NCBI GenBank assembly: GCA_024704765.1
Contig: JAKMXF010000310.1
Coordinates: 124,001-188,000 of the forward strand
From: Oopsacas minuta
Taxonomy: Eukaryota; Animalia; Porifera
Direction: 5' to 3'
DNA: 64,000 bases
The notes under the pieces are model-generated. The model searched no databases. It was not told where the DNA came from and saw nothing but the letters and a program-made list of their open reading frames with translations. The translations under genes and the position numbers were made by a program. How positions within the stretch are numbered: position 1 is the first letter of the stretch; each line of letters begins with the position of its first letter. Below, piece by piece: positions 950 to 17,020 of the stretch.

Positions 950-2741
950 CATACTACTAGCAGAGAGAATAGTCATTACGTATAACACAAGTCATTACTT
1001 AATATTTTTTAGAACTTTCAAATTGCCAAATCATTAGTTTATAATTAGAATAAAATAAAGATTTATTGCTCAGTCTCAAAAATTATTTTAAATTGGATAA
1101 TACAGACACTTCGCTACACGAGTAGTCAAGCAGATTATAAATAATTTAGTGTATTGGACGATTTGGAATTATTATGTGGTAATGGTGTATCGCTAATTAT
1201 ATTATTTAATAAACAACCAGAAGAGAACATTTTATTATGGCATGACCATGCACCAGTGTGCACACGTGCACACCAAGCACGTCCATAAACTGCACATTCT
1301 TAAAACTGTCCACTATGGGTAGGGTATTTAATTCCAATCCCGGGATTAGTACCACGCATTACAAAAATAATACATTGTTTGTGGCTGTTGTTATACAAAA
1401 ATAACAACAACTACAAACAATTTTAAAAGTGATGAGCAGTATTTTGTAGTCTACTCTAGCTGTGACAGGTAACCAATGTAATTTTTTTAGTATTGAAGTT
1501 ATGTGGTCTCGCTCTTAGCTGCAGCATTTTGTATACTCTGTAGTCTATTCAGTTCTTGTGATGGTAATCCAAAAAGTATAATAATACACTAGTCTATTCG
1601 GCTGGAGATGTATGCATGAACTAATCTCTGAACAGAAGACTTGTGCAAATATTTGTGTAGAGTTCCAATCCGATTTAGGGCAAGTGATGCCACACTGCAT
1701 TTTCTACTTATATGAAATATCATCCGTACCGTGTTTATCCCAAATATCATCAAGATTTAGAGCCAAGTCTACTGGATATATAACAGAAGATCCAAACATA
1801 ATGGGGAAGGTAGGATAGAGTGATCGAGATTGGGGAGTTAAATAAATAAAGTTAGTCTTATTTGGATTTTAGTAAGTTTATTATCAATAAACCAATTCTC
1901 AGAGTAGACAAACAGGTTTCTAATCGGATCTTGGCTTCTTCTGTTGCTGATGGTTGCTGACTATATTTGAAAGATATTCGACTTCTTTTTGGTGGTAAGT
2001 TTGTTGAATATACGTATAATACTTACAGATTTAGCATTATTCCTTAATCCTTATCCTATCTTTTATCCAACATTTTTTGTATGCTTAGCCCAAAGTATTG
2101 CAACTTTGAGTCTACAACAAAACAACATTATAAAAACTTATCAAAGATTTACTCACACTTTTATGGAATATATAACATATTTACAGAACACTAAAGTTTC
2201 GAGCAAATTTATCCTTCTGTGTTGGATAAATTCTCTTGAAATTATCAAAGAATATATTCATCTACAACAGCTGTACTTGAAAGATATTCATCAATATAGT
2301 TAGCAATTTGCTTCTTAACCGTAGCCAGTAGGATAGGATGATGAGATTCTGTTGTCTAGGTTCTGTAACCAACTCGAACCCTTCGTTCTTTTATTTATCC
2401 GCAAAGTTCTTGATCGATTACTTTTAAAATATTGTAAAATATTCCATACTAGCCTGAAACAAGTCAGATTTTCAAATTATATTTTACAAATGTCCCCCAA
2501 GCCCTCCAGGACTATGCTTATGACTTGTGGCACCTTGACTACTAGAGGTAAGATCTTGTAAGTTGTAATGCAATCTATAAATTAAGCTAGCAAAACTAGA
2601 AATACATGAGCGATATTGGAGATATTATGAGTAAGTATAAATCCTCGGCTTAATTGTGCTTGAATAGTATAGAAGCAATAATTATACTATATTTATTTGC
2701 TGAGATTTATACAGAATTTTTGTTGTACCATTAATTATAGA

Positions 2742-3536
2742 ATGTTACCTAAAAAATTATGTAACATAATCGCGATGATTCACACCCTTCCACTCCCTGG
2801 TTCACCTCTCTACAGAAGATCCCTTGATAAGATAATATCACAAGCTAGTAAAGAAGCTGAGATATACTGCAAACATGGCGTGGATTGCTTAATGGTTGAG
2901 AACATGCATGATAGACCTTACTTACATACTAAAGTTTCACCTGAGACTGTATCAGCTATGACTAGAATATGCTTAGCAATAAAATCTAGAATTGGTTCTG
3001 CTATTCCTATGGGAATACAAGTTCTATCTGCAGCTAATAAGGAAGCATTAGCTATAGCTAAGTGTTGTGAATTGCAATTTATACGAGCGGAGGGATTCGT
3101 GTACTCTCATGTAGCAGATGAAGGATGGACTGATTCGTGTGCAGCTAGTCTACTGAGATATAGACAAGTTATAGGAGCAGAGAATATTCAAATATACACT
3201 GACATTAAGAAGAAACATGCGTCACATGCTGTCACACATGATTTAGATATCGTTGAGGTTGCAAAGGGTGCAGAGTTTTTCTTGAGTGACGGTTTGATTT
3301 TAACAGGTATCTCAACCGGACAACCAGCTTCAGTAGAAGAATTTGAGAAATTGAGAGCATATTCAAATTTACCTATCTTTATTGGCAGTGGGGTTAATCA
3401 AGTGAATATTTCGTTATTCGAGAAGGCAACAGGTCTCATTGTAGGCTCTCATTTCAAGAAAGATGGAGTTTGGTATAACGAAGTGGATGAGGGTAGAGTT
3501 CGAGAATTTATGAAGATAGCGAAAACTTTAGACTAA
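2742..3536 (+). CDS. BtpA/SgcQ-family TIM-barrel protein (F13E9.13-like)
   Basis: Motifs IIAMIH..PLPGSP, VENMHDRPY, GIQVL..N, FIRAEGFVYSHVADEG, DIKKKHASH, DGLILTG..TG, GSGV, GLIVGS.FK.DG. The first ATG of the 2697-3536 ORF is at 2742. Confidence 0.9.
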   Translation: MLPKKLCNIIAMIHTLPLPGSPLYRRSLDKIISQASKEAEIYCKHGVDCLMVENMHDRPYLHTKVSPETVSAMTRICLAIKSRIGSAIPMGIQVLSAANKEALAIAKCCELQFIRAEGFVYSHVADEGWTDSCAASLLRYRQVIGAENIQIYTDIKKKHASHAVTHDLDIVEVAKGAEFFLSDGLILTGISTGQPASVEEFEKLRAYSNLPIFIGSGVNQVNISLFEKATGLIVGSHFKKDGVWYNEVDEGRVREFMKIAKTLD

Positions 3537-3755
3537 TCACTTAGTAGTATATGACTTATATAATATTTTTTGAACAGAAAACTAATATCCCGTATATATA
3601 TGCGTCATGCTCGTACTTTTTGCCTACTCATTCTACCGTCCGAAGGATATGAGTTAGGGCCATGAACCTGGTCAATGAGGGCGTGGCCTAATAGTCTGAC
3701 ACCCAAGACATATATGATGAAAGTTGGATAATATCTAACAAAGTATCCCTTATAC

Positions 3756-4245
3756 CAGGGGCGTAGATCCGTAATTTTTCTGGGGGGATGGAGAATTTAA
3801 AACTAGCACTTTTCTACATATGACAAATATGAATATGCCATAATCGTAGTCATTAAACTTCCTACCTCGACAAAAAGATAGATACACAATAATAAAAACA
3901 GCTAAGAACAGATCATAGTATATATAAAATATAATTTATACTTGGTAGTGTGAAGAGAACCTATTGATTTAATATATCTAGATTAAAGTATAAATTATTC
4001 GAAATTGTCAAATATTTTCGACGTATTTCACTTCTCGTTGAAAACTCTTTTGCTAGTGTAGCGATATTTATTCTATCAAGAATTTCTTTGTGAACATTAC
4101 ATACACATACTGAATTCAAACGTTTCTGGGTCATTGAATTCCTGAGCCGTCTTTATTTGAGAGCAAAAATAATGTAGACGTATCTCAAAAGTTAAAATGT
4201 AGGAGGGGTGATTACATAGAGCATCCCCCGGGATCTACGCCCCTG
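3756..4245. mobile_element. Non-autonomous DNA transposon (hAT- or P-type MITE), 490 bp
   Basis: Perfect 15-bp TIR CAGGGGCGTAGATCC (3756-3770) / GGATCTACGCCCCTG (4231-4245). Identical 8-bp flanks CCTTATAC at 3748-3755 and 4246-4253. Confidence 0.9.
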
Positions 4246-5839: not shown

Positions 5840-6535
5840 ATGAGTGAGGAGGAAATTATACTACTATCTTGTCCCAACACTACTATGTATGTAGGAGGAG
5901 GATTTGTGGGTACAGGACTACTCTCCGTAAGAGAAGACTACATAACCTGGGAGAGTGAATTGATGGATACAAGAGTACTCCAATACACAAGACTGTCTAT
6001 GCACGCCGTGTCTAGAGACCTGACACAGTTCCCTCACCCCTGTATTCTATGTCTACTGAACAGAAGTGATGACTCAGGTGATGGAGAGTTGGATGAAGAC
6101 CCGCTGGAAGAAGTACGATTTGTTCCTGAACAAAATTCTCAACTACAGACCATCTACTCAGCGATAGCAGAGGGACAAAATCTCCATCCAGACCCTGAAG
6201 ACGGCTCCTCAGGAGATGAGATGTTAGAAACAGCTGGAGACAGTTTAGGAACAGAAAATACACAAGAAATAACAGCTGATCATCACTACCAGCCTATTCA
6301 TATGAGCGATGGAATGCAGGGGGTGTTCACGAGCCTTGATGAAGTAGCACATTTGACACCTGAAGGACTTGAGCTTCTAAACAAACTAGACGGGATGTTG
6401 TTATCACCTAAAGATATGAATAATAACTATTTACAAGAACCTGTGTCTGGAAATGTTGGCTCTCTGGATACCAGTGAGATAGGTTGTGAAATAGAGGAAG
6501 GACAGTTTGATGACGTCACATTAATGGATGCATAA
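5840..6535 (+). CDS. CLNS1A: Methylosome subunit pICln
   Basis: PH-like fold with G.G.L.V....ITW, Y..LSMHAVSRD...FP.PC, EVRFVP....L..IY.A..EGQ.LHPDPED, and an acidic tail ending GQFDD. Confidence 0.9.
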   Translation: MSEEEIILLSCPNTTMYVGGGFVGTGLLSVREDYITWESELMDTRVLQYTRLSMHAVSRDLTQFPHPCILCLLNRSDDSGDGELDEDPLEEVRFVPEQNSQLQTIYSAIAEGQNLHPDPEDGSSGDEMLETAGDSLGTENTQEITADHHYQPIHMSDGMQGVFTSLDEVAHLTPEGLELLNKLDGMLLSPKDMNNNYLQEPVSGNVGSLDTSEIGCEIEEGQFDDVTLMDA

Positions 6536-7149
6536 CTATTTTATATAAATTATTTGTAGTAAATCAATTGCAGGAATTAAGTGCTATCCGTCAAGTTATA
6601 ATACCTTTGAGTAATCGGTTTTGCAAAAAAGGGAGTCTGACCTTACAACGAATGTATAGAATTGTTATAATTATAAATATTCCGCTCTTAGTACATGGCG
6701 CATGACAGTAGTAGCAAAAATCCCATATCCTTTTGGATTTTCTATTCGAAAAACTAATCAGCGATTAAATTTTGTTTCCCTGTAATACAAATTATGGTAT
6801 TCCACTAGACTGTGATTTCTGTGTGGTGATTTAACTGTCTTCACATTACTACATTTTTTGTCAAAATATTGATTTTATCTGTGTAGGTGGACTTTTTGGT
6901 TAATTGTCCCGTTTTTTCCCGACATTTGCTTTAGGCTATATCATAAACTAAGACTAGTGCTATTCGAAACGGCATTGTTGGCTTACTTTGTTATTCGATT
7001 ATTCGAAAGAAATTATTTCTTTTGAAATTTCCATTAACTTACATATAACATACAAAGAAAGATTTTGAATGATGGTATAAATAATGTATTTAACGTCTTG
7101 TTCCTTTTAATCATCTTTTTGTTTGTTACTAATCCTTGCTAGCATCTGG

Positions 7150-8253
7150 ATGGATCGCTTCCAATGGTGTGACAGTGCTAAGCTTCTTCCAGGAGAAGTT
7201 ATATCTTTATCAAAAGATCAGATAAAGTTATACGACGGTGATGATGAGAGCAATTTCCAGCCAGGACTCTTGCAACTTACGTCACATCGTCTGTTATTCC
7301 ATGATTCAGGTGGTTCCTTATTAGCCCTCAGTTTAGCCCTGCTACGTGACCATAAGGAGACAGGAGGAGGACTCACTCGCAGTCCTAAGATCGAACTCTA
7401 CCTGCTCCCCAGACCTCAGGGACAACCTCTTGGTCCTATAGCTCGTAGCAGATACGATATGGTTAAGCTATCCTTCAGGAAGGGGGGGTGTACTGAATTC
7501 TGTTCTGCTCTTAAGACAGAGCTGAGTAACAAGAATTGGGAGCGTGTTACAGCAGGACCTGCCCGTGGGATATCCGGTATAGAGAGGAAGTTGGAGCAGA
7601 AACGACAGGATGCTGGTAGAGACATAAATGTAGCGTTTAAGGATCTAAAAGCTCTTATGGACAAGGCTCAAGAGATGGTATCACTGATTAATACATTTGC
7701 TACTCGTATGGAACAATCAAAAGGCTCAGTAGTAGAGGATGAGACTATAAAGCTAAAATCTGTACTACTCAGTGTAGGTATAGATAATCCTGTTACTAAA
7801 TCTAGTCACGGGTCTACTACTGTGTATCATCAGGAATTAGCTCGTGAGCTGTCTAAGTTCTTGGTTAAATTGCTTCCTGGTGAGAACGGGATTATAACGC
7901 TAGCTGACCTCTATTGCAGGTTCAATAGGGCTAGGGGATTAGAGCTGGTCTCTCCTGATGATGTGTTTAACGCCTGTACCCTATTCGAACGGATGGGATT
8001 ACCTGTCAGATTGAAGAAGTTTGAATCAGGTGTCCTGTGTGTACTCGGAGCTTCACATAGTGAATCTGAAGTTGTGAAGCGAGTAGGAGATCTTGTCATG
8101 AAACACAAGTGTCTGTCAGTGCAAGAGTTATCTGCCTATCTTCATATATCTGTGTTACTAGCACAAGAACACATGCTATTAGCTGAGAGGGTGGGAGCTC
8201 TTTGTAGAGATGATAGTGTAGATGGACTCAAATTCTATACGAATAGGTTTTGA
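7150..8253 (+). CDS. VPS36: ESCRT-II subunit VPS36 (EAP45)
   Basis: MDRFQW start, GLUE domain (KLYDGD, G.L.LTSHRL), GISGIERKLE, AFKDL.ALM.KA.EMV, LS.GIDNPVTK, RARGLELVSPDD, LCRDDSVDGLKFY.NRF. Single exon. Confidence 0.95.
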   Translation: MDRFQWCDSAKLLPGEVISLSKDQIKLYDGDDESNFQPGLLQLTSHRLLFHDSGGSLLALSLALLRDHKETGGGLTRSPKIELYLLPRPQGQPLGPIARSRYDMVKLSFRKGGCTEFCSALKTELSNKNWERVTAGPARGISGIERKLEQKRQDAGRDINVAFKDLKALMDKAQEMVSLINTFATRMEQSKGSVVEDETIKLKSVLLSVGIDNPVTKSSHGSTTVYHQELARELSKFLVKLLPGENGIITLADLYCRFNRARGLELVSPDDVFNACTLFERMGLPVRLKKFESGVLCVLGASHSESEVVKRVGDLVMKHKCLSVQELSAYLHISVLLAQEHMLLAERVGALCRDDSVDGLKFYTNRF

Positions 8254-8503
8254 TATTTGATTGTTAGGTTGTATGTTATTCTAATTAATAATTACTTTTA
8301 ATTGGGACACATTAATGTCAGGAAATATATCGCTAGCTACCCGAATAATTGAACAAAAATATTTTTGATTATCTCAATCAATTAATAACCCGTTTGAGAG
8401 AAAATTACATACTGACCGAGTTCTAGAATATATCACTTAACTCCCTTAACATATTAGAATTAGATTAACACAACGCCCAGAGGTGGGATACTACTAGTAA
8501 CTT

Positions 8504-11211
8504 ATGTGTGAAGCATCAGATACTGCAAAATTCAGGGATAAACATGCAAATAGAATTCTCCCTAACCTCTGGTCAAATGTTAGTGATTGGATACACACTC
8601 TAGAGGACAAGTATGCTGACTTAATATCCGAGGACCTGGAATGGACATCTAGGATGGAGGGAATAGTGAGAGCTGGTTCTTATATAATGACACTAGGTCA
8701 ATCTGAATTCATATCAGAGCTAGTATACTCTATTTCTAACGCAATGGTATTATTCAATGATTCTATCATTTTATCTGTTCTCAGAAGAAAGAGTAAACAG
8801 AATTTTCTTAAGAAAATTCTCTTCAAAACTCTTGCCATTCTTGAAACATTCCAAGTGTCCATTGAAATGATAACAAAGCGTTACCTAGGAGAGAGATTGA
8901 GATGGACAGTAATAACAATAATTTCCCTACTCAAATCTCTGTCAAGAGCTCTGCTAGTGTTCTATCTACGAGCTGGTGTATCTCATTGTCAAGTAGTTCA
9001 GCCTCTAGATAGACAGCTGTTCGTTAATAAACATCAAGTAGAAAGAGAGGTAGGTGATGGACCAGCTGTTACTAGTGCTGGTAAGGCTTGGATGGGAAAT
9101 AGGACTAATAAGGTTATCAGATCTGTACAAGATGGTATGTTGAGTATAGATATACTGATTCGTATTGTTTATTTCGGCCTTTTGGGATCGGTAACTTCTC
9201 CAAACGGAGGTGATGCCAATTATTTGACCACTTACGTATTTATGTTGTTTCTGTAATTCTGGTATATTTCATATAACCATGCATAGGACACACATAATAA
9301 TATCCGTTTACACGGAAAAAGATCGTAAAGAAAAGCTTCCAACATATGATTAGGTTACAAGGACGATTAGTTTAAAGAACCCCGATCTGTTACTACCGGT
9401 CTGTCGATTGGCATGTTTCTATCAAAATATTATCAACAGATCCTATAGCTATATTCGGTTTCGGTTTCGGAAACAGCCATAATGACTTATTTACCTAAAT
9501 TTGATATCTGGTTTGGTACAACTACTTCATACGATTCTATTAACAAAAAGTTTTTAGATGTTAACAGACCTTATGAGGAGTTGAAAGAGAGTCACTTACA
9601 CATTCGTGACCCAATGGGACCAGATGAAGTACCTTGGTCTATTCTAACTCAAAATCAGCTGTTAGCAGAGGGTATCAGTATTGTGAAGCCAATTGCACAC
9701 TGTATCCTCTTTTCAATAGAGCTTGAATCTCTTATTCGGGAAATTGTTTATTAATTATGTCAATCGGGGTAATATGCTAACTCCCAGAGTTTCCGCATAA
9801 ACTGATTCTACTTGAATTCTATTCCTGTATTTTGCTTTATTAAGTGCAAATACATACTCATAATTCACATAAGTGGTTCCAATGCTCATTAATCACATTT
9901 TCACACCTTTTGGTGAACATTTCAAAATTGTCATAGAGATTAGCTTCCACTTGTTAAATAGGTGTAAACAGGGACGTAGAATTTGATTAGTAAAATTCGA
10001 TTTTATCTTTCTTTACTAAAATGGATATTTAGTAGAATAATACAGTTTAATAATCCACTAAAATTATTTGGGTAAATTTATTTCGGCGCAGATGCTGATT
10101 GAGATTTTTTCACTTATTTGTTAATACAATGACTACAATCATATCTCTTATCTTGTTGTCTTGATTCTATGTGAATATTTCCTTAACATATACAGTGCTG
10201 TCAATGGCAGCATTTGGAGAAACTTCTATCAAATCTTGGTTCATCCCACTTACAATGGATATTATTAGGTACTTAATTACAATCTTTACTAGCACTGAAT
10301 ACGGAATTATAATTGATTACAGTACTGTTTAAGTTTCAAAATATTTTGTTAGGGTTAGTGAAAAGTATTGATACAATACTATAGGATCCAGGAGTGTGTA
10401 TGATATTTCGATATATTTCAGCTGTGTTCTGAGGGTCTGGCGTAGTTATATTATTCCTATTATCTGTATAGTTTGTATTTGATGGAGAGTGGAGGGACTA
10501 ACTTTCGTAAACGTGAATTACAAGAGTTGACGAAAAGAAAATTCAATTTTATATTCTATATAATGAGGTCTCCAGTCTATGACAAATACTTCAAGTAAGA
10601 TTGTGATTAATACTTTATAGTGATTCTGTATAGAAGTACACAACTACCTAAAGCATTGTATATGTATTATGGATGATATTATGGTCTCATGAATATGAAA
10701 CTGATAATTTCTAACTTTGAAAGAGAGAACGAAGCAATTGATAGATTTGGTCCTACCTTGGAACTATTTAAGTTTTGGCATAGCATGGTTTTGAACATAT
10801 AAAATTACCTCCTAGACTAATACCCCCAAAATACTCCGGTTGAGAATCATTATCTCTATTGAGTGGCCGTTACGAAACTTATGAAAAGTCCCTACAAATA
10901 TTATTAATTATAACAATAGCAATCAATGTATGACTTATCCCAATTTTAGTTATAATTCTATTGAATCTATTGATTATCTATGCTAGATCGAAGTTAATGA
11001 GCATCCTCGGGTACTTGGCTAACAGAATACCGCTATTTGGTAGATTAATAGGTATGTTATTTTATATGATTATATTATTATCCCCCACGTTACTATACTA
11101 GTCTCAGAGGAATGCAAGTAATTCAATAATTAATATATTCTATCTCTAGAACAATTCATACATTATATCCCTACTTGGCAGACAACCTATTTCTATGTGT
11201 GGGCTAGCTGA
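8504..11211 (+). CDS. PEX16: Peroxisomal membrane biogenesis protein PEX16, 6 exons
   Basis: Exons 8504-9134, 9558-9701, 10196-10268, 10472-10594, 10987-11051 and 11150-11211 join in frame. Motifs SELVYSISN..VLFND, EM...R.LGE..RW.VI, YIMRSPVYDKY, YIPTWQTTYFYVW. Confidence 0.9.
9702..10195 (+). other. U12-type (minor spliceosome) GT-AG intron of PEX16
   Basis: Donor GTATCCTCT at 9702. Branch motif TTCCTTAAC at 10179-10187. Acceptor AG at 10194-10195 with no pyrimidine tract between the branch motif and the AG. Confidence 0.85.
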
Positions 11212-12330
11212 TGTAATTCGTACGGTTATTAAATCTATAGTAAAGTTTTTGTATACGAGAACACTACTATAATGCTTTATTATTGCTTTTAGAATAATGT
11301 TTTACATTTTCGATTCATTGTTATCTTTATAATATAAATACATTATTGGCTGAATTTCTCATTCCAAGATATAATATAATATACAGTGGAAAGCGCTAAC
11401 AACGAATAGAATGTGACCGTCCTAGTTAGTTGGTTATAAGTGTGTTTTACTGTAATAACAATTGGGACCTCTCATATAGGGTCTACCACATTAACATACT
11501 ATATATTGTTTCTTGACCCAACTATTATTCGGCATAACTAATGGTCTAATTAATTTGAGAGTGGAGTTACATAGTTAATGATGGGCCAGTCAACTAGCAC
11601 CAACTCGTCCCACAGTTGTTATACGTATTTCCTTTCTCAAAACTCTCCTCAACCACTCTATTGTCGTGCATATTGCTTAGCACCCTTAGTACAGCATTCC
11701 CAACCCGAGGTCACTGAAAGTATATTTCATTTATTCATTATCATGCAATGATCACAAAATATAGCAATACTAAGTACAAAATGTAGATTTCAATCTGCCT
11801 TTATTAATTGCTACTTCCTTTTGGTGCATCTGGAGATACGAGTTTTGAATTTCAAGTTCTCAGATAAGAAATGAAATTGAAACTCGATTTTGTGAATTGA
11901 CTGGTTATTTGAAAAGGAGAAAAGAGGCATTTTTTGAGAGAATCGGAGGAAATAAATATAATCAACAATTTAATCTATTTCTGAACTCAAAAACGCATCA
12001 AAATTCCCAAAATCTTTTATTCCATTCTTGAATGAATTCATTAATGAGTATAACAGTAATTAATGGGTTTGGTAGAATTGAACTTATGAATTCAAGTAAC
12101 TTGTCTACCACAGTTATATACTTATTTGCAGATAAAGTTATACCTGTAGTGGGTGTAGATACTCCAGGTAGTGGTGTGGGACAATTCAATTTCCAATTTG
12201 GTGTAGACCAGTAGTAGTGGATAAAACAACAGATAACATGTGTGTAGCAGATTATAATAACAACAGGGTAATTAAATGCATTAGAGGAATTTCAAGTTTT
12301 TCTCAAATTTAATTTACGAATTTATTTTTA

Positions 12331-12804
12331 CACTAATGTAGACTAATGCAGACTAATGTAGACTAATGTAGACTAATGCAGACTAATGCAGACTAATGTA
12401 GACTAATGTAGACTAATGTAATGTAGACTAATGTAATGTAGACTAATGTAATGTAGACTAATGTAGACTAATGTAGACTAATGCAGACTAATGCAGACTA
12501 ATGCAGACTAATGTAGACTAATGTAGACTAATGTAGACTAGACTAATGTAGACTAATGCAGACTAATGTAGACTAATGTAGACTAATGTAGACTAATGCA
12601 GACTAATGCAGACTAATGCAGACTAATGTAGACTAATGTAGACTAATGTAGACTAGACTAATGTAGACTAATGTAGACTAATGCAGACTAATGCAGACTA
12701 ATGTAGACTAATGTAGACTAATGTAATGTAGACTAATGTAGACTAATGCAGACTAATGTAGACTAATGCAGACTAGACTAATGTAGACTAATGCAGACTA
12801 ATGT
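12331..12804. repeat. Tandem array of (GACTAATGYA)n, built from the pentamers GACTA and ATGTA/ATGCA
   Basis: About 470 bp read directly. Occasional doubled GACTA or ATGTA units. An identical 65-bp block occurs at 12481-12545 and 12596-12660. Confidence 0.97.
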
Positions 12805-13716
12805 TAAAATTGAATTTGGAAATACAATGGAACCTCCTTGTAATAGATACATTGAGAGTAGTGCTGGGTTCACCTCAAGTTTATGAATTTCTTTTCAGTA
12901 TTATTGTATTTTTGCGTTGTCCAATACTGCACTGGATGCAAAATATGTACAGCTGACTGTTTTCATCCGGTATCTCGAATCCTCACGACTCATGGTAATT
13001 AAAATCTGTTCAAAATAACAGACTTTAGAGTAACTACTAAGCAGATTTTAGGAGGGAAATTGTTCGAATTATCATGCATTCGTGATAACATGTGTTAACG
13101 ATATAAATCTTGCCATTGGTTCTCAATAACTGTATGTTTGGGGTTCCGACCTGAAGTTAAGGTTGTCCGAGAATTGGAGATTACTTTTCTAATAGACATA
13201 TGAAACATTCCATCATTGCGAACGGTAGTCATAGTTTAGACTTTAGTAGTCCGTATTCGGAGGCTCTACGATAAGAAGATATATGTTCTCCTCATCTTTA
13301 AATACATGTACTACTAGAATTCTCTCAGACCAATATTAGTGTAATTCTTCCAAATTCCTACTAAGAACATCTTTATATATATATATATATCGAATTTCGT
13401 ATGCTGGTACGTATGCACCGGCACCCAGCTGAATTCTGTCCGGTCGATCCCATAGATGCCAGATTCCAACCTGGCGTCTCACCAATCCTTGATGAGGTGG
13501 GCATCTCGGTATCAAAATATACAGTAAGGAGCCAAAACCCGTAAGATTTACAGTTTTTTCGCGAGGATCACTGATAACCTGTCAGAGTATCTCTGCGATC
13601 CGTGTAAATAGCTATCATATCACCCATTTGTACTTGCATAACCCAACCTCACGAAATCCATAAACCATATCCGAGTCTCACTATAGTAGTGGTAATGTTA
13701 TTTATTATTTAGTCGT

Positions 13717-14466
13717 ATGGCTACTCGTATTAGCTCTGAATCTTTATCAATTTTCCAACAAGCAAGGAATGCTATTGACAAGGATATTAAAGATATAATT
13801 CAGTCTTTGAATAACAAGAAACTTGAATTGTTTGCAGAGATAAATACCTTAGAGAAAGAGTTTGCTGAACAAAAACAACAAAAACAAAAGAAGATAAACA
13901 AACTGCACGCACTGATAGCACAAACAGAGGAATTAGGAGAGAATAGCTTACTACATCTACAACAGAAAATAATCCATGACATACAACAAGAAATTGAAAA
14001 GCTAAATTTAGATTACAATAAAGGTCCAAGTTATAACCTCTGCGTAACTTGGGAAATCCCAAAAGAAAATATCATTCTTAATATTCGTAACAATTCAATG
14101 GAAATAACCGTACAGCAATATACTAATATAGTAGAACAAGAAATTAATGGAAGCATAGCCCATGACGGAAGTAAAAGAGCTAGATATATCCTTGTATTAG
14201 ATGTAAAGCCTTATGATAGTGAGACACATTTTACAGATCTCGACAGGATTGTGAGGGCTGTAGAGATGGAGGGATTAACATGGGGAAAATCTAAACAAAT
14301 CCCAATAGCTTACGGTATTAGTAAGTTACGAATATCAGCTGTTATTTACGAGGAGCTAGTATCAGCTGATCTTATTTGTGATATGATTGAGAGGGATGAA
14401 GATCACATACAGAGCACTGAAATACTATCATTACAAGAATGTAATGATAGTTTCCCTGACATGTAG
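13717..14466 (+). CDS. Chimeric protein: N-terminal coiled coil fused to an eEF1B (EF1-beta/delta) guanine-nucleotide-exchange domain
   Basis: The last 90 or so residues (LDVKPYDSET, GLTWG.SK.IPIAYGISKLRI, EDHIQSTEI) match the EF1_GNE pattern (LDVKPWDDET, GL.WG.SK..P..YGI.KL.I, EDHVQSTDI). The first 110 or so residues are heptad-rich. Intact single-exon 249-aa ORF. Confidence 0.85.
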   Translation: MATRISSESLSIFQQARNAIDKDIKDIIQSLNNKKLELFAEINTLEKEFAEQKQQKQKKINKLHALIAQTEELGENSLLHLQQKIIHDIQQEIEKLNLDYNKGPSYNLCVTWEIPKENIILNIRNNSMEITVQQYTNIVEQEINGSIAHDGSKRARYILVLDVKPYDSETHFTDLDRIVRAVEMEGLTWGKSKQIPIAYGISKLRISAVIYEELVSADLICDMIERDEDHIQSTEILSLQECNDSFPDM

Positions 14467-14537
14467 GGTGTATACTTTCCCACAGATTATTTATATGTAT
14501 GTATGTATGATGATTCAGTATTTCAATGCTATTAAGG

Positions 14538-14640
14538 CTGCGGTTCCCAACCCAGGGTCCACAGACAACAGCAGGGGATCCACAGAATGTGTTTATATTA
14601 GTTAAGGAGATCTACGGGTGAAAATGGTTGGGAACCGCTG
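14538..14640. mobile_element. Charlie/Buster-like hAT MITE
   Basis: TIR CTGCGGTTCCCAACC / GGTTGGGAACCGCTG. The interior resembles the reverse complement of the element at 22569-22641. The flanks do not give a clean TSD. Confidence 0.75.
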
Positions 14641-14960
14641 TACTAGGATATCAAACACAATCCTTTTAGGTCACATGTCTATTTCATCAGACATATCAAA
14701 GGATTCATTGGTATGGATGTGGATATATGGTTATACGTGGATAAACCTCTGATAGCTGCATAATCGAGACTTCAAGGCCATATACTTGTGCCGTGTTTCG
14801 GAGGTTATGAACCATTATTAGAGTAGGAAATTAATCGGTGGAGTAGGAGGGTGCCGTATAATGTTTGCATTTCAGGGTTGCCTATGCTCCAAATCTAACT
14901 GAATACTAACAAGGGTCTAATTTCCATTAGAGTGTTTAGTTGATGATTTGATATTTGCTT

Positions 14961-15599
14961 ATGGCATCATTTAAGAAACCTGGCCCGAAGGGCTCCAGAC
15001 CTCCCAGTGATTCATTTCGTAGGAAATGGGACTCTGACGAGTATCTACAGAAAGCTAGAGACAGATTGGCTCAGGAAGCGATGGAAGAGCAAGCACGGAA
15101 TGAAGTAAAGGTCAAGAGAGAATTACTAAAACACAGAGATTACAAAGTAGATCTGGAGTCTAGGTTGGGAAAGACGACAATAATCACAAAGAACACTCCC
15201 CAGTCACAAACAGGAGGATATTATTGTAATGTATGTGATTGTGTGGTTAAAGATTCCATAAACTTCTTAGACCATATTAATGGAAAGAAACACCAACGTA
15301 ATATGGGTATGTCTATGAAGATAGAGCAATCTAGTCTGGATCAAGTGAAGAAGAGATTCGAACAGAACAAACGCAAATTAGAGGAACGAGCACAAGAAGG
15401 ACAGTATAATCTAGAAGAACGTACTGCTGCTTTGAAGCGAGAAGAAGAGAGAGATAAGTTAAGGAAAAAGGAGTTTGAGAGAGACAAGAAGAGGAGAAGG
15501 TTAGAAGAGAGCGAGCAGTTGGTGGCTAATTCACAAGATGATGAGGTTGCAGCTATTATGGGATTTGGTGGGTTTGGTGGTAGCAAAAAGAACAGTTAA
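14961..15599 (+). CDS. ZMAT2: Zinc finger matrin-type 2 (Snu23 homolog)
   Basis: FRRKWD..EY, RELLKHRDYKVDLES.LGKT, GGYYCNVCDCVVKDSINFLDHINGKKHQRNMGMSM, MGFGGFGGSKK. Confidence 0.96.
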   Translation: MASFKKPGPKGSRPPSDSFRRKWDSDEYLQKARDRLAQEAMEEQARNEVKVKRELLKHRDYKVDLESRLGKTTIITKNTPQSQTGGYYCNVCDCVVKDSINFLDHINGKKHQRNMGMSMKIEQSSLDQVKKRFEQNKRKLEERAQEGQYNLEERTAALKREEERDKLRKKEFERDKKRRRLEESEQLVANSQDDEVAAIMGFGGFGGSKKNS

Positions 15600-15688
15600 T
15601 ACTATCTTTGTGTACAATTTAATTATTATTAAACATTATTAAATCTTCAATGATATGTATTCATGCAACATTGATATTAAGTTGTATA

Positions 15689-17020
15689 TTATACAGTGAA
15701 AATAGTTTGTTTATACGCAATACTTTTCCTGCAAATAGGACAGGTATTAACCAGCTTAGCACATGATATACAAGACACAGAGTGTCCACATGGACAGAAT
15801 ACTGTCTTGACTCTATTAGCATAACATATCTTGCAGTACTCTTGTTTAATTCTCTTCTCTCCTCCCTCTACACTGATTTTACTTATGTCTAGACCATTGA
15901 GTGTACTGTCTAGACTAGAGTCAGTTATTCCACTATTACTACGTTTAAGATCAGACATATCTAATTCCATGACGTCATCATTATCTTTACCATAACTTAA
16001 GGTAGAATCCTCCAGTTGTAATTGCGTCCCTTCATCCATCCTATGTAGTCTTGTCCAGTGATACGCATAGCTCTCCTCCTGTGTTCTAATCAGATTGAAT
16101 AAGAAATAGCTGCCTTTATTCAGGCCTATACGACTGGGTTTATAACGATGAAATAGAATTCCTTCTGGTACACTCCGTTGGCATACAAACACATGATGTT
16201 CTGTTAGGCACCTGAATATCTCACGAGTTAGTTTTCTGCTACAGAACCTAGTACACAGTGTCATATGATCTCCGTTTGTATCTTTCTTTTTCGATGTTAT
16301 TGTTAGTTTTTTCTCTGTGTATGATATTTCCATTATATCCTGTATTGACATCAAATTATGTATCACTGCAGTATTCCTATCAGATAACGTTATGCTACCA
16401 TTCCCTATTGTTAATATTATATCTCTATTATACTGTATATCAGCTGAGAATGTATACAGACCATAACCTCTAGCTTGAGAAACTATTTGTAAATACTGTC
16501 CCATTATTTCTTTATCACTCTTCCCTTCTAACTGTTTCAGCTGTTGATTGATATCCCAGCTGAGATTTTGGCTCCACACTTGCTCAGGGAAGAAACGAGT
16601 TATCACAGCACTTCTACCAGCTCTCACCTCGCCCGACAGCTTCTCTAGACGACACATCAATGCTCCTGCTTTAGCAATGTATTTCTCTTCTAATGTAATA
16701 TCTCCAATCCTAATCTTATCCTTCAATTCATGGTAATACATCCTCTTAGTTGTTGTCTGTTGTATTTTTGAAGGATCTACGAAACGCTTTACACATAGCA
16801 TTATTCGGGAATTTTTATTATGAATCTGGTCAAACAAAGGTCTTCTTAGAAACAACCAATAGCTGTTACCTTTCTTCAAACGTTTTAATCCAAAGAAGTC
16901 AGTTTCATAAACTCCTAATCTCTTACATACACTCTCAAGAAATTCTATTCCACTCACATCTCTTGTACATACTTCTTCTAACAAAACAGAATTAGGTAAG
17001 CGAACTTGAACAGTATTCAT
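15689..17020 (-). CDS. MYLIP: FERM + C-terminal RING E3 ligase, MYLIP/IDOL-like
   Basis: N-terminal FERM F1 (VC..LG..ETDFFGL, WL.LR.P) and C-terminal RING CKICY......VFCPCGH.VSC..CA..V..CPICR. Likely start is the ATG at 17020 (MNTVQV); the ORF is open to 17095. Confidence 0.8.
   Translation of the reverse strand: MNTVQVRLPNSVLLEEVCTRDVSGIEFLESVCKRLGVYETDFFGLKRLKKGNSYWLFLRRPLFDQIHNKNSRIMLCVKRFVDPSKIQQTTTKRMYYHELKDKIRIGDITLEEKYIAKAGALMCRLEKLSGEVRAGRSAVITRFFPEQVWSQNLSWDINQQLKQLEGKSDKEIMGQYLQIVSQARGYGLYTFSADIQYNRDIILTIGNGSITLSDRNTAVIHNLMSIQDIMEISYTEKKLTITSKKKDTNGDHMTLCTRFCSRKLTREIFRCLTEHHVFVCQRSVPEGILFHRYKPSRIGLNKGSYFLFNLIRTQEESYAYHWTRLHRMDEGTQLQLEDSTLSYGKDNDDVMELDMSDLKRSNSGITDSSLDSTLNGLDISKISVEGGEKRIKQEYCKICYANRVKTVFCPCGHSVSCISCAKLVNTCPICRKSIAYKQTIFTV

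Follow-up and report, generated by a model that had tools for sequence, protein, structure and literature searches.

The glass sponge Oopsacas minuta carries a gene that joins the exchange (GNE) domain of the translation factor eEF1B to a coiled-coil module, with glutamate where the exchange domain should have its catalytic lysine. We analysed a window of 64,000 nucleotides of its genome (contig JAKMXF010000310.1, positions 124,001 to 188,000), and positions below are those of this window unless another locus is named. The combination of coiled coil and GNE domain is unique in the collections that we searched. To judge from the pattern of substitutions, it belongs to a real and selectively maintained gene. 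The reading that we prefer, and to which we give about even chances, is that this lineage-restricted chimeric gene encodes an exchange-impaired, oligomeric "pseudo-GEF" that would tether eEF1A. The sequences show how the gene is built, where its two halves come from and that it is kept by selection in more than one organism, whereas oligomerisation, binding of eEF1A and impaired exchange are inferred.

An intact frame in an ordinary neighbourhood

A preliminary description of this stretch, made from its letters alone, had reported an intact frame of 249 amino acids. The frame is indeed uninterrupted from its ATG on the forward strand (13717-14466), and the anatomy proposed for it falls at the correct coordinates (Table 1). 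The identical protein sequence is already present in public collections, as an unnamed prediction. A single-exon gene is not unusual in O. minuta, because genes of this genome contain a mean of only 1.59 introns (PMC10280926). The flanking genes are ordinary animal genes, encoding Vps36, Pex16, a ZMAT2-like zinc finger protein, a FERM-RING protein and an ankyrin protein.

About 90 bp 3' of the stop codon lies a short, high-copy repeat (14556-14647), over which summed contig depth rises roughly 10-fold. Many diverged copies of this repeat, continuing into unrelated sequence, were present in all four runs, including that of a second organism described below (organism B), and the repeat probably represents a MITE or SINE-like element.

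Table 1. Features of the chimeric gene, in window coordinates
Feature	Position	Strand	Remarks
Complete single-exon CDS	13717..14466	+	ATG start, uninterrupted, 249 aa; stop TAG at 14464-14466
N-terminal family module, aa 1-130	13717..14106	+	Long coiled-coil helix (aa 7-101), then PxY-x-I-x-W segment and short helix
Junction/linker, aa 131-153	14107..14175	+	Bounded by tblastx/tblastn end points; low pLDDT
EF1_GNE domain, aa 154-241	14176..14439	+	beta-alpha-beta-beta-alpha-beta fold; Pfam, PDB phmmer, AF2, Foldseek
Tyr157 (TAT), replacing Ser	14185..14187	+	Ser in 100% of 84 canonical domains
Tyr199 (TAC), equivalent to yeast Phe163	14311..14313	+	Ungapped register; aromatic anchor kept
Glu241 (GAA), in place of catalytic Lys205	14437..14439	+	AAG in canonical glass-sponge genes
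C-terminal extension, aa 242-249	14440..14463	+	Predicted disordered; pLDDT <50

A genuine exchange domain without its catalytic lysine

The EF1_GNE domain that had been recognized in the translation proved genuine. PF00736 matched aa 159-240 (nucleotides 14191-14436; E=3.1e-20) with 72.5 bits against a cut-off of 20.8, and was the sole Pfam domain above its cut-off. In a phmmer search of the PDB, aa 154-241 aligned without gaps to positions 6-93 of yeast eEF1Balpha (1f60_B; E=5e-23), and fragments of human eEF1Bbeta/delta likewise gave ungapped alignments. An AF2 model of aa 144-249 (pLDDT 78) has the topology listed in Table 1, and its best Foldseek matches were 2b7b_B and 1f60_B, both from yeast eEF1A-eEF1Balpha complexes, and 9a9s, the human eEF1 complex. 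A word-index search with aa 150-249 returned the query alone, and no relatives were found in a scan of JGI metagenomes.

The ungapped register sets Glu241 opposite position 93 of 1f60_B, which is Lys205, in agreement with the alignment first proposed. This lysine is present in 100% of 84 canonical GNE domains, among them the canonical genes of likely glass-sponge origin. In yeast, the Mg2+ pocket is disrupted by Lys205, which also contacts the P-loop (PMC4227793); in the K205A mutant exchange is 13-fold lower, and growth functions are still supported (PMC9292714).

We extended the comparison to the 48 columns that are at least 80% conserved in the 84 canonical domains. The window protein matches the consensus in 32 of these, as against 35-37 for the related canonical sponge genes. 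Losses found in the window protein only are Ser to Tyr157 (column 100% conserved), Asp to Glu212 (100%), Asp to Glu235 (98%), Asp to His171 (90%) and, at the catalytic position, Lys to Glu241 (100%); besides Lys205, equivalents of yeast Ser121, Asp176 and Asp199 are altered. The fold-defining residues Gly186, Leu187, Trp189, Gln232 and Ser233 are all kept, as are Tyr199 and Val215. Tyrosine is itself the consensus at the Tyr199 column, in 85% of canonical domains. Its yeast equivalent Phe163 is an aromatic anchor on eEF1A domain II that is important for stable eEF1A binding (PMC9292714), and Val179, the equivalent of Val215, contacts His95 of eEF1A (PMC4227793).

The N-terminal module belongs to a family of coiled-coil proteins

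About 110 amino acids of coiled coil had been described ahead of the exchange domain. A long helix is modelled there, but the region is not a generic coiled coil: it is a module shared by a family of proteins. With the family alignment, AF2 gave a single 95-residue helix with pLDDT >90 over most of its length, followed by a short helix (mean pLDDT of the N-terminal model, 82.8). The two domains were modelled separately, and a joint MAFFT alignment, which had superimposed both modules, was discarded. From the 3-4 spacing of hydrophobic residues along the 95-residue helix we infer, rather than read from the model, an oligomeric coiled coil, because a model of a monomer cannot show oligomers.

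HMMER searches of 1.84 billion representative proteins returned 1,492 matches that fell into two disjoint sets: about 40 representative proteins matched aa 8-130 only, and hundreds of eEF1B proteins matched aa 152-241 only. No second protein with both modules was found among these 1,492 matches from the 1.84 billion representatives. The N-terminal module is 33-48% identical to 40 other module copies across the module alignment, and the window protein has all 17 columns that are invariant or nearly invariant in the family. The conserved signatures IFQxAR, CLNxKK, LExEF, QTEELGxN and PDYxIxIxW are likewise all present. A word-index search with aa 1-140 gave P0002 as its sole match. In the ESM Atlas, look-alikes of the N-terminus reached scores of 0.75-0.76, short of the useful range, and structure matches were generic helices.

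In a tree of the modules, the closest relatives of the window protein are the O. minuta hypothetical proteins LOD99_15808, LOD99_15809 and LOD99_15810 (KAI6658095-97), tandem paralogues with which it clusters. Their cluster lies at 10001-13601 (+) of locus L008 (O. minuta contig JAKMXF010000110.1); LOD99_15809 has two module copies, and a more diverged family member with an RG/Y-rich tail is found 7 kb away on the opposite strand (2640-3272, -). The two matched stretches of P0012 are also the N-terminal module twice. Synteny was compared between the window and L001, the locus at which an N-terminal relative was first found, and the two have repeats and the module only in common. These results point to a previously unnamed coiled-coil family in sponges.

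When 40 family members were scanned, the window protein alone had a Pfam domain in its C-terminal half (1/40). The others end either in disordered, low-complexity tails rich in RG/RGG or in the module repeated once more; the window protein does not have the RG-rich tail that is a feature of the family and carries the GNE domain in its place. Disordered RG/RGG-rich tails are found in P0002, P0012, P0015, P0019, P0022, P0026, P0029-P0032, P0040, P0041, P0080 and P0089. Many RG/RGG-tailed members terminate in an acidic-tryptophan motif (...DWD, ...SWD or ...DDW), which is a candidate short linear motif.

The variety of these C-termini bears on one alternative reading, in which the GNE fold now serves to bind some partner other than eEF1A, or acts as a structural cap, and the primary function is that of the coiled-coil family. 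In all the other members the same module is followed by tails of various kinds, so that the C-terminal part seems to be exchangeable; moreover, several residues that are invariant in canonical domains, and that probably serve in the interaction with eEF1A, are gone, and the domain evolves fast. Set against this, the equivalent of Phe163 is retained as tyrosine together with most surface-conserved positions, and the count of consensus columns (32/48) is to be compared with 35-37 in canonical sponge genes. On balance we regard re-use of the fold as unlikely.

The exchange domain corresponds to the last exon of eEF1Balpha

A tree built from 129 GNE domains places the window domain as the sister of a cluster containing P0013 (support 0.92), with P0028 joining next (0.96); its branch, of length 0.53 against a median of 0.15, is 3.5 times the median. 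These nearest relatives are short ORFs called on large contigs of ENA assemblies. The assemblies are likely those of a related glass sponge, because one of them also has L001, which shares repeat families with the window. With full-length eEF1Balpha queries, tblastn located a GST-like first exon 1.7-1.9 kb upstream of the relatives. Directly upstream of their GNE exon stands DFDLFGDDD..., followed by an intron of about 50 nt and a last exon starting IREAEE. The relatives are the last exons of canonical, multi-exon, Lys-bearing eEF1Balpha genes that end QKFS or QKI. By comparison with these canonical genes of related assemblies, the window domain is clearly derived from eEF1Balpha, and of that gene only the last exon has an equivalent in the window protein. 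The GST-like and DLFG parts, whose absence the preliminary description had pointed out, are missing: PF21972 and PF10587 were unmatched and the window protein has no DLFG motif, whereas canonical matches carry both.

The canonical eEF1Balpha genes that we located (L003, 4118-6327; L004, ~6071-8345; L002, 4307-6267) encode KPYD where almost all eukaryotes have KPWD, and in all three the intron of about 50 nt lies immediately before the GNE exon. Between the first and later eEF1Balpha exons of L003 and L004, the opposite strand has an ORF of 420 aa with NHL repeats. At a further locus, L005, the eEF1Balpha last exon and a downstream RhoGAP gene occur twice in inverted orientation (2587-2985, -; 3652-3996, +), and the cause may be a palindromic duplication or an error in assembly.

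Similarity to the N-terminal family stops near aa 130, and clear similarity to eEF1B sets in at aa 154-155. The canonical last exon starts about 17 aa upstream of an AKS/ARS motif. At aa 138, where this exon would begin, there is a faint match of I-V-E-Q-E in the window protein to I-R-E-A-E, which is only suggestive as a trace of the canonical exon start.

In our reconstruction, a member of the sponge-specific coiled-coil family swapped its RG-rich tail for a copy of the last exon of the sponge's own eEF1Balpha, and the captured exon brought the GNE domain only, without the GST-like and DLFG exons. The copy then diverged faster than its parent, under continued purifying selection, with the fold and the aromatic eEF1A anchor kept. 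Its losses are the Mg2+-displacing lysine (AAG to GAA), the stop codon, which left a floppy overhang of 6 residues, and three more near-invariant residues.

A quite different origin would make the protein a highly diverged sponge orthologue of eEF1Bdelta, with an N-terminus that descends from the leucine zipper of delta. Its parts come in the identical order (helix or zipper, then GNE), a pattern A-R-x-x-I ... L-E-x-E is faintly common to both, and phmmer aligned the delta protein P0134 over aa 14-239. However, when the N-terminal family was compared by hhalign with a profile of the A-R-x-x-I and leucine-zipper region of ten eEF1Bdelta proteins, the probability was 2.3%, and on this result we rejected the idea. 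The N-terminus instead belongs with about 40 representatives of a separate family that lacks GNE domains, the GNE domain of the window protein groups with likely glass-sponge eEF1Balpha last exons and not with delta sequences, and the central acidic region is missing. Orthology to eEF1Bdelta is highly improbable.

Substitutions explain the loss of the lysine and of the stop codon

An extended C-terminus had also been described, and 8 amino acids do follow residue 241; in 90 of the 92 Lys-bearing domains examined, the tail after the lysine is 2 aa or fewer. We compared the extension codon by codon with L002, L003 and L004. The canonical end CAA AAG TTT AGC TAA stands against CAA GAA TGT AAT GAT in the window: the first two residues of the extension align with the last two canonical ones, and the ancestral stop is now GAT, which adds 6 residues. 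Because this alignment with the canonical genes needs no frameshift, both the change of Lys to Glu and the loss of the stop can be explained by substitutions alone, and a frameshift origin of the tail was rejected. A hidden C-terminal intron was rejected as well: no GT follows CAA, and splicing at the sole candidate site (GTAATG at 14441, acceptor at 14485) would still leave the lysine missing.

In fungi, read-through of an intron that lies just before the Lys codon gives false "MQS..." endings. The models P0050, P0057, P0070, P0075, P0097, P0105 and P0159 end in "...AAMQS/V" followed by unrelated residues, not in "...AAMQKL". Their endings fit such a read-through, and would be an annotation artefact and not a loss of the lysine.

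The gene is present in a second organism and shows purifying selection

The preliminary description had allowed that the fusion might be an assembly chimera, and an error in sequencing could likewise have produced the Glu codon; we found nothing in favour of either and put the chance as negligible. Run X2 gave a contig of 12.3 kb that covers 12800-16000 without a difference, and unitigs of two more runs tile this region exactly. In addition, a copy about 95% identical is present in organism B, which comes from a different study (run X5). The organism-B contig spans 13706-14236 with 24 substitutions and 0 gaps; since it crosses the junction, a chimera at that point is excluded and the fusion stands.

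Comparison with organism B revealed no indels in 531 bp of coding sequence; indels occur in the upstream spacer, in the 3' flank and in the spacer before the next gene. Among the 19 of 24 differences that were displayed, the changed codons comprise 8 synonymous and 9 non-synonymous ones (dN 0.024, dS 0.097, omega 0.25; binomial p=0.008 for the synonymous excess); if the other five were all non-synonymous, the excess would be much weaker, with p about 0.05 by a rough estimate. Four of the nine displayed amino-acid differences fall in aa 135-148.

Over longer distances, the window GNE domain compared with canonical GNE exons gave dN 0.21-0.25, dS 0.8-1.9 and omega 0.11-0.29, with dS relative to the parent gene near saturation. 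The corresponding values between canonical GNE exons were dN 0.035, dS 0.92 and omega 0.04, and those between the N-terminal modules of the window protein and P0002 were dN 0.347, dS 1.453 and omega 0.24. Purifying selection, for which a dN/dS comparison had been suggested at the outset, is detectable at omega of about 0.1-0.3. By these ratios, both halves have been under purifying selection, relaxed relative to that on the parent gene. The constraint is weak, because the density of substitutions against organism B (~4.6%) equals that of nearby intergenic DNA and exceeds that of the neighbouring genes (2.4-3.3%).

Divergence similar to that of intergenic DNA is what might be expected of a young chimeric ORF without function, drifting to decay, and the restriction to one lineage and the loss of the catalytic residue would agree with such a fate, as would the outcome of searches in sequencing runs, which brought up no RNA run with the gene. 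Yet the halves are 40-55% diverged in protein from their nearest relatives and the frame is still open, with all fold-defining residues kept. An omega of 0.1-0.3, and 0 indels in the coding sequence compared with organism B as against many in the flanks, also speak for maintenance. From these signs of constraint, decay appears unlikely.

Proposed docking on eEF1A without normal exchange

In the pseudo-GEF reading, the long helix would make dimers or trimers and thereby present two or three exchange-impaired GNE domains. These domains would dock on eEF1A through their conserved face, including Tyr199. Glu241 and the extended tail would be unable to fill the role of the lysine at the Mg2+ site and the P-loop, so that release of GDP would be slow or absent. 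Instead of recharging eEF1A, the protein would tether or sequester it on a coiled-coil scaffold. Binding of eEF1A without normal exchange had been suggested in the preliminary description and is plausible on the strength of the residues involved; it is helped by the retention of Tyr199 and by the 13-fold exchange defect of K205A. For a role as a decoy against pathogen factors, which had been suggested as well, the analysis gave evidence neither way.

Three points weigh against the pseudo-GEF reading. K205A is partly functional in yeast (PMC9292714), so activity could survive the loss of the lysine; GDP might in principle be destabilised by an acidic side chain as well; and the change S157Y, with the longer tail, might block eEF1A binding altogether.

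A fuller version of the same idea, which we hold to be possible but doubtful, adds a cellular role. Here an oligomeric pseudo-exchange factor, formed by exon capture onto a lineage-specific scaffold family, would trap eEF1A in a dead-end or slow-release state and serve as an elongation brake or as an anchor in syncytial tissue. In the literature searched, we met no endogenous regulator of eEF1A of the pseudo-GEF kind.

Alternatively, the protein may still be an active exchange factor, a home-made counterpart of metazoan eEF1Bdelta, with its coiled coil and GEF domain, that multimerises exchange domains, with Glu241 either tolerated or working as an acidic finger against the beta-phosphate of GDP. 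In Sec7-type ARF-GEFs, a glutamic finger repels the GDP beta-phosphate. The architecture does parallel that of eEF1Bdelta, whose leucine zipper trimerises and shows three GEF domains (PMC9458455), and the fold, Tyr199 and Val215 are retained. The yeast K205A protein has some activity and rescues growth (PMC9292714), and the purifying selection detected here is in keeping with a working enzyme. By contrast, the lysine is 100% conserved in the 84 canonical domains, those of the sponge's own lineage included, three further positions that are 98-100% conserved are altered, and a C-terminus that normally ends 1-2 residues past the lysine is lengthened. A branch 3.5 times the median length also fits a changed rather than a conserved function. 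Taking both sides together, we consider continued exchange activity unlikely.

If the pseudo-GEF reading is true, evolution would here have produced a natural pseudo-GEF for eEF1A. The gene would in addition be a clean and datable case of a new gene made by capture of one exon of an essential housekeeping gene, and a natural experiment on the role of Lys205, in which a charge reversal is coupled with a C-terminal extension. Its reach is limited to one sponge lineage, in an organism that is hard to work with experimentally.

Comparison with known systems

Canonical eEF1Balpha (yeast Tef5, human EEF1B2 and the genes at L002-L004) shares with the window GNE domain 45-62% identity without gaps, a common fold and the aromatic anchor. 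The eEF1Balpha proteins of the P0013 cluster also have the KPYD and AVIY-D/E-ELVS signatures in common with the window protein, and KPYD is shared with P0028 too. Unlike eEF1Balpha, the window protein has neither a GST-like domain nor an acidic DLFG region, is encoded by a single exon rather than several, and sits on a much longer branch. It further differs in the replacement of Lys205 by Glu and in a C-terminus lengthened through loss of the stop codon.

The likeness to eEF1Bdelta (EEF1D, called eEF1Bbeta in PMC9458455) is one of layout: an oligomerising N-terminal helix comes first, and a flexible linker joins it to the GNE domain at the C-terminus. The eEF1Bdelta zipper forms trimers and is able to hold as many as three eEF1A molecules (PMC9458455). 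Homology between the N-termini is undetectable, whereas the layout is alike, and because the hhalign probability is just 2.3% we take the resemblance to be convergent; the window protein also lacks the acidic region and the catalytic lysine, and its GNE domain is of alpha type. Tested for eEF1B features, the window protein has the EF1_GNE fold (PF00736) and the aromatic anchor. It belongs to neither the eEF1Balpha nor the eEF1Bdelta class of subunits: a catalytic lysine 1-2 residues from the C-terminus, the acidic DLFG region of PF10587 and a gamma-binding N-terminus were looked for and are absent.

On the N-terminal side, LOD99_15808-15810 and about 35 related proteins from sponge assemblies resemble the window protein in their 130-aa module, the nearly invariant residues of which are all common. 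They differ in having disordered RG-rich tails, often with an acidic-tryptophan end, and no GNE or other Pfam domain.

The yeast K205A mutant (PDB 2b7b/2b7c), the top structural match, is likewise without the Mg2+-site lysine, and its fold and eEF1A binding are kept. It carries an engineered alanine in an otherwise canonical protein, whereas the window protein has a natural charge reversal to glutamate, more changes and a longer tail.

GNE copies without the lysine also exist in Trichuris (P0165, P0119), in Raphanus (LOC108808798) and Eruca, as P0066 and P0078, and in a Stenamoeba transcript (P0037). These are divergent extra copies, all uncharacterised, and E, N, R or A stands in place of their catalytic lysine. 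Two or three tandem GNE domains are found in P0165, P0021 and P0119 (Trichuris), P0066 and P0078, P0037, and P0036 (JGI metagenome), and the Lys-less tandem-GNE proteins look like independent origins of eEF1B-like paralogues. The Lys-less copies of Trichuris, Raphanus/Eruca and Stenamoeba have tandem GNE domains or eEF1B-like N-termini and no coiled-coil module, and by the GNE tree they arose independently of the window protein.
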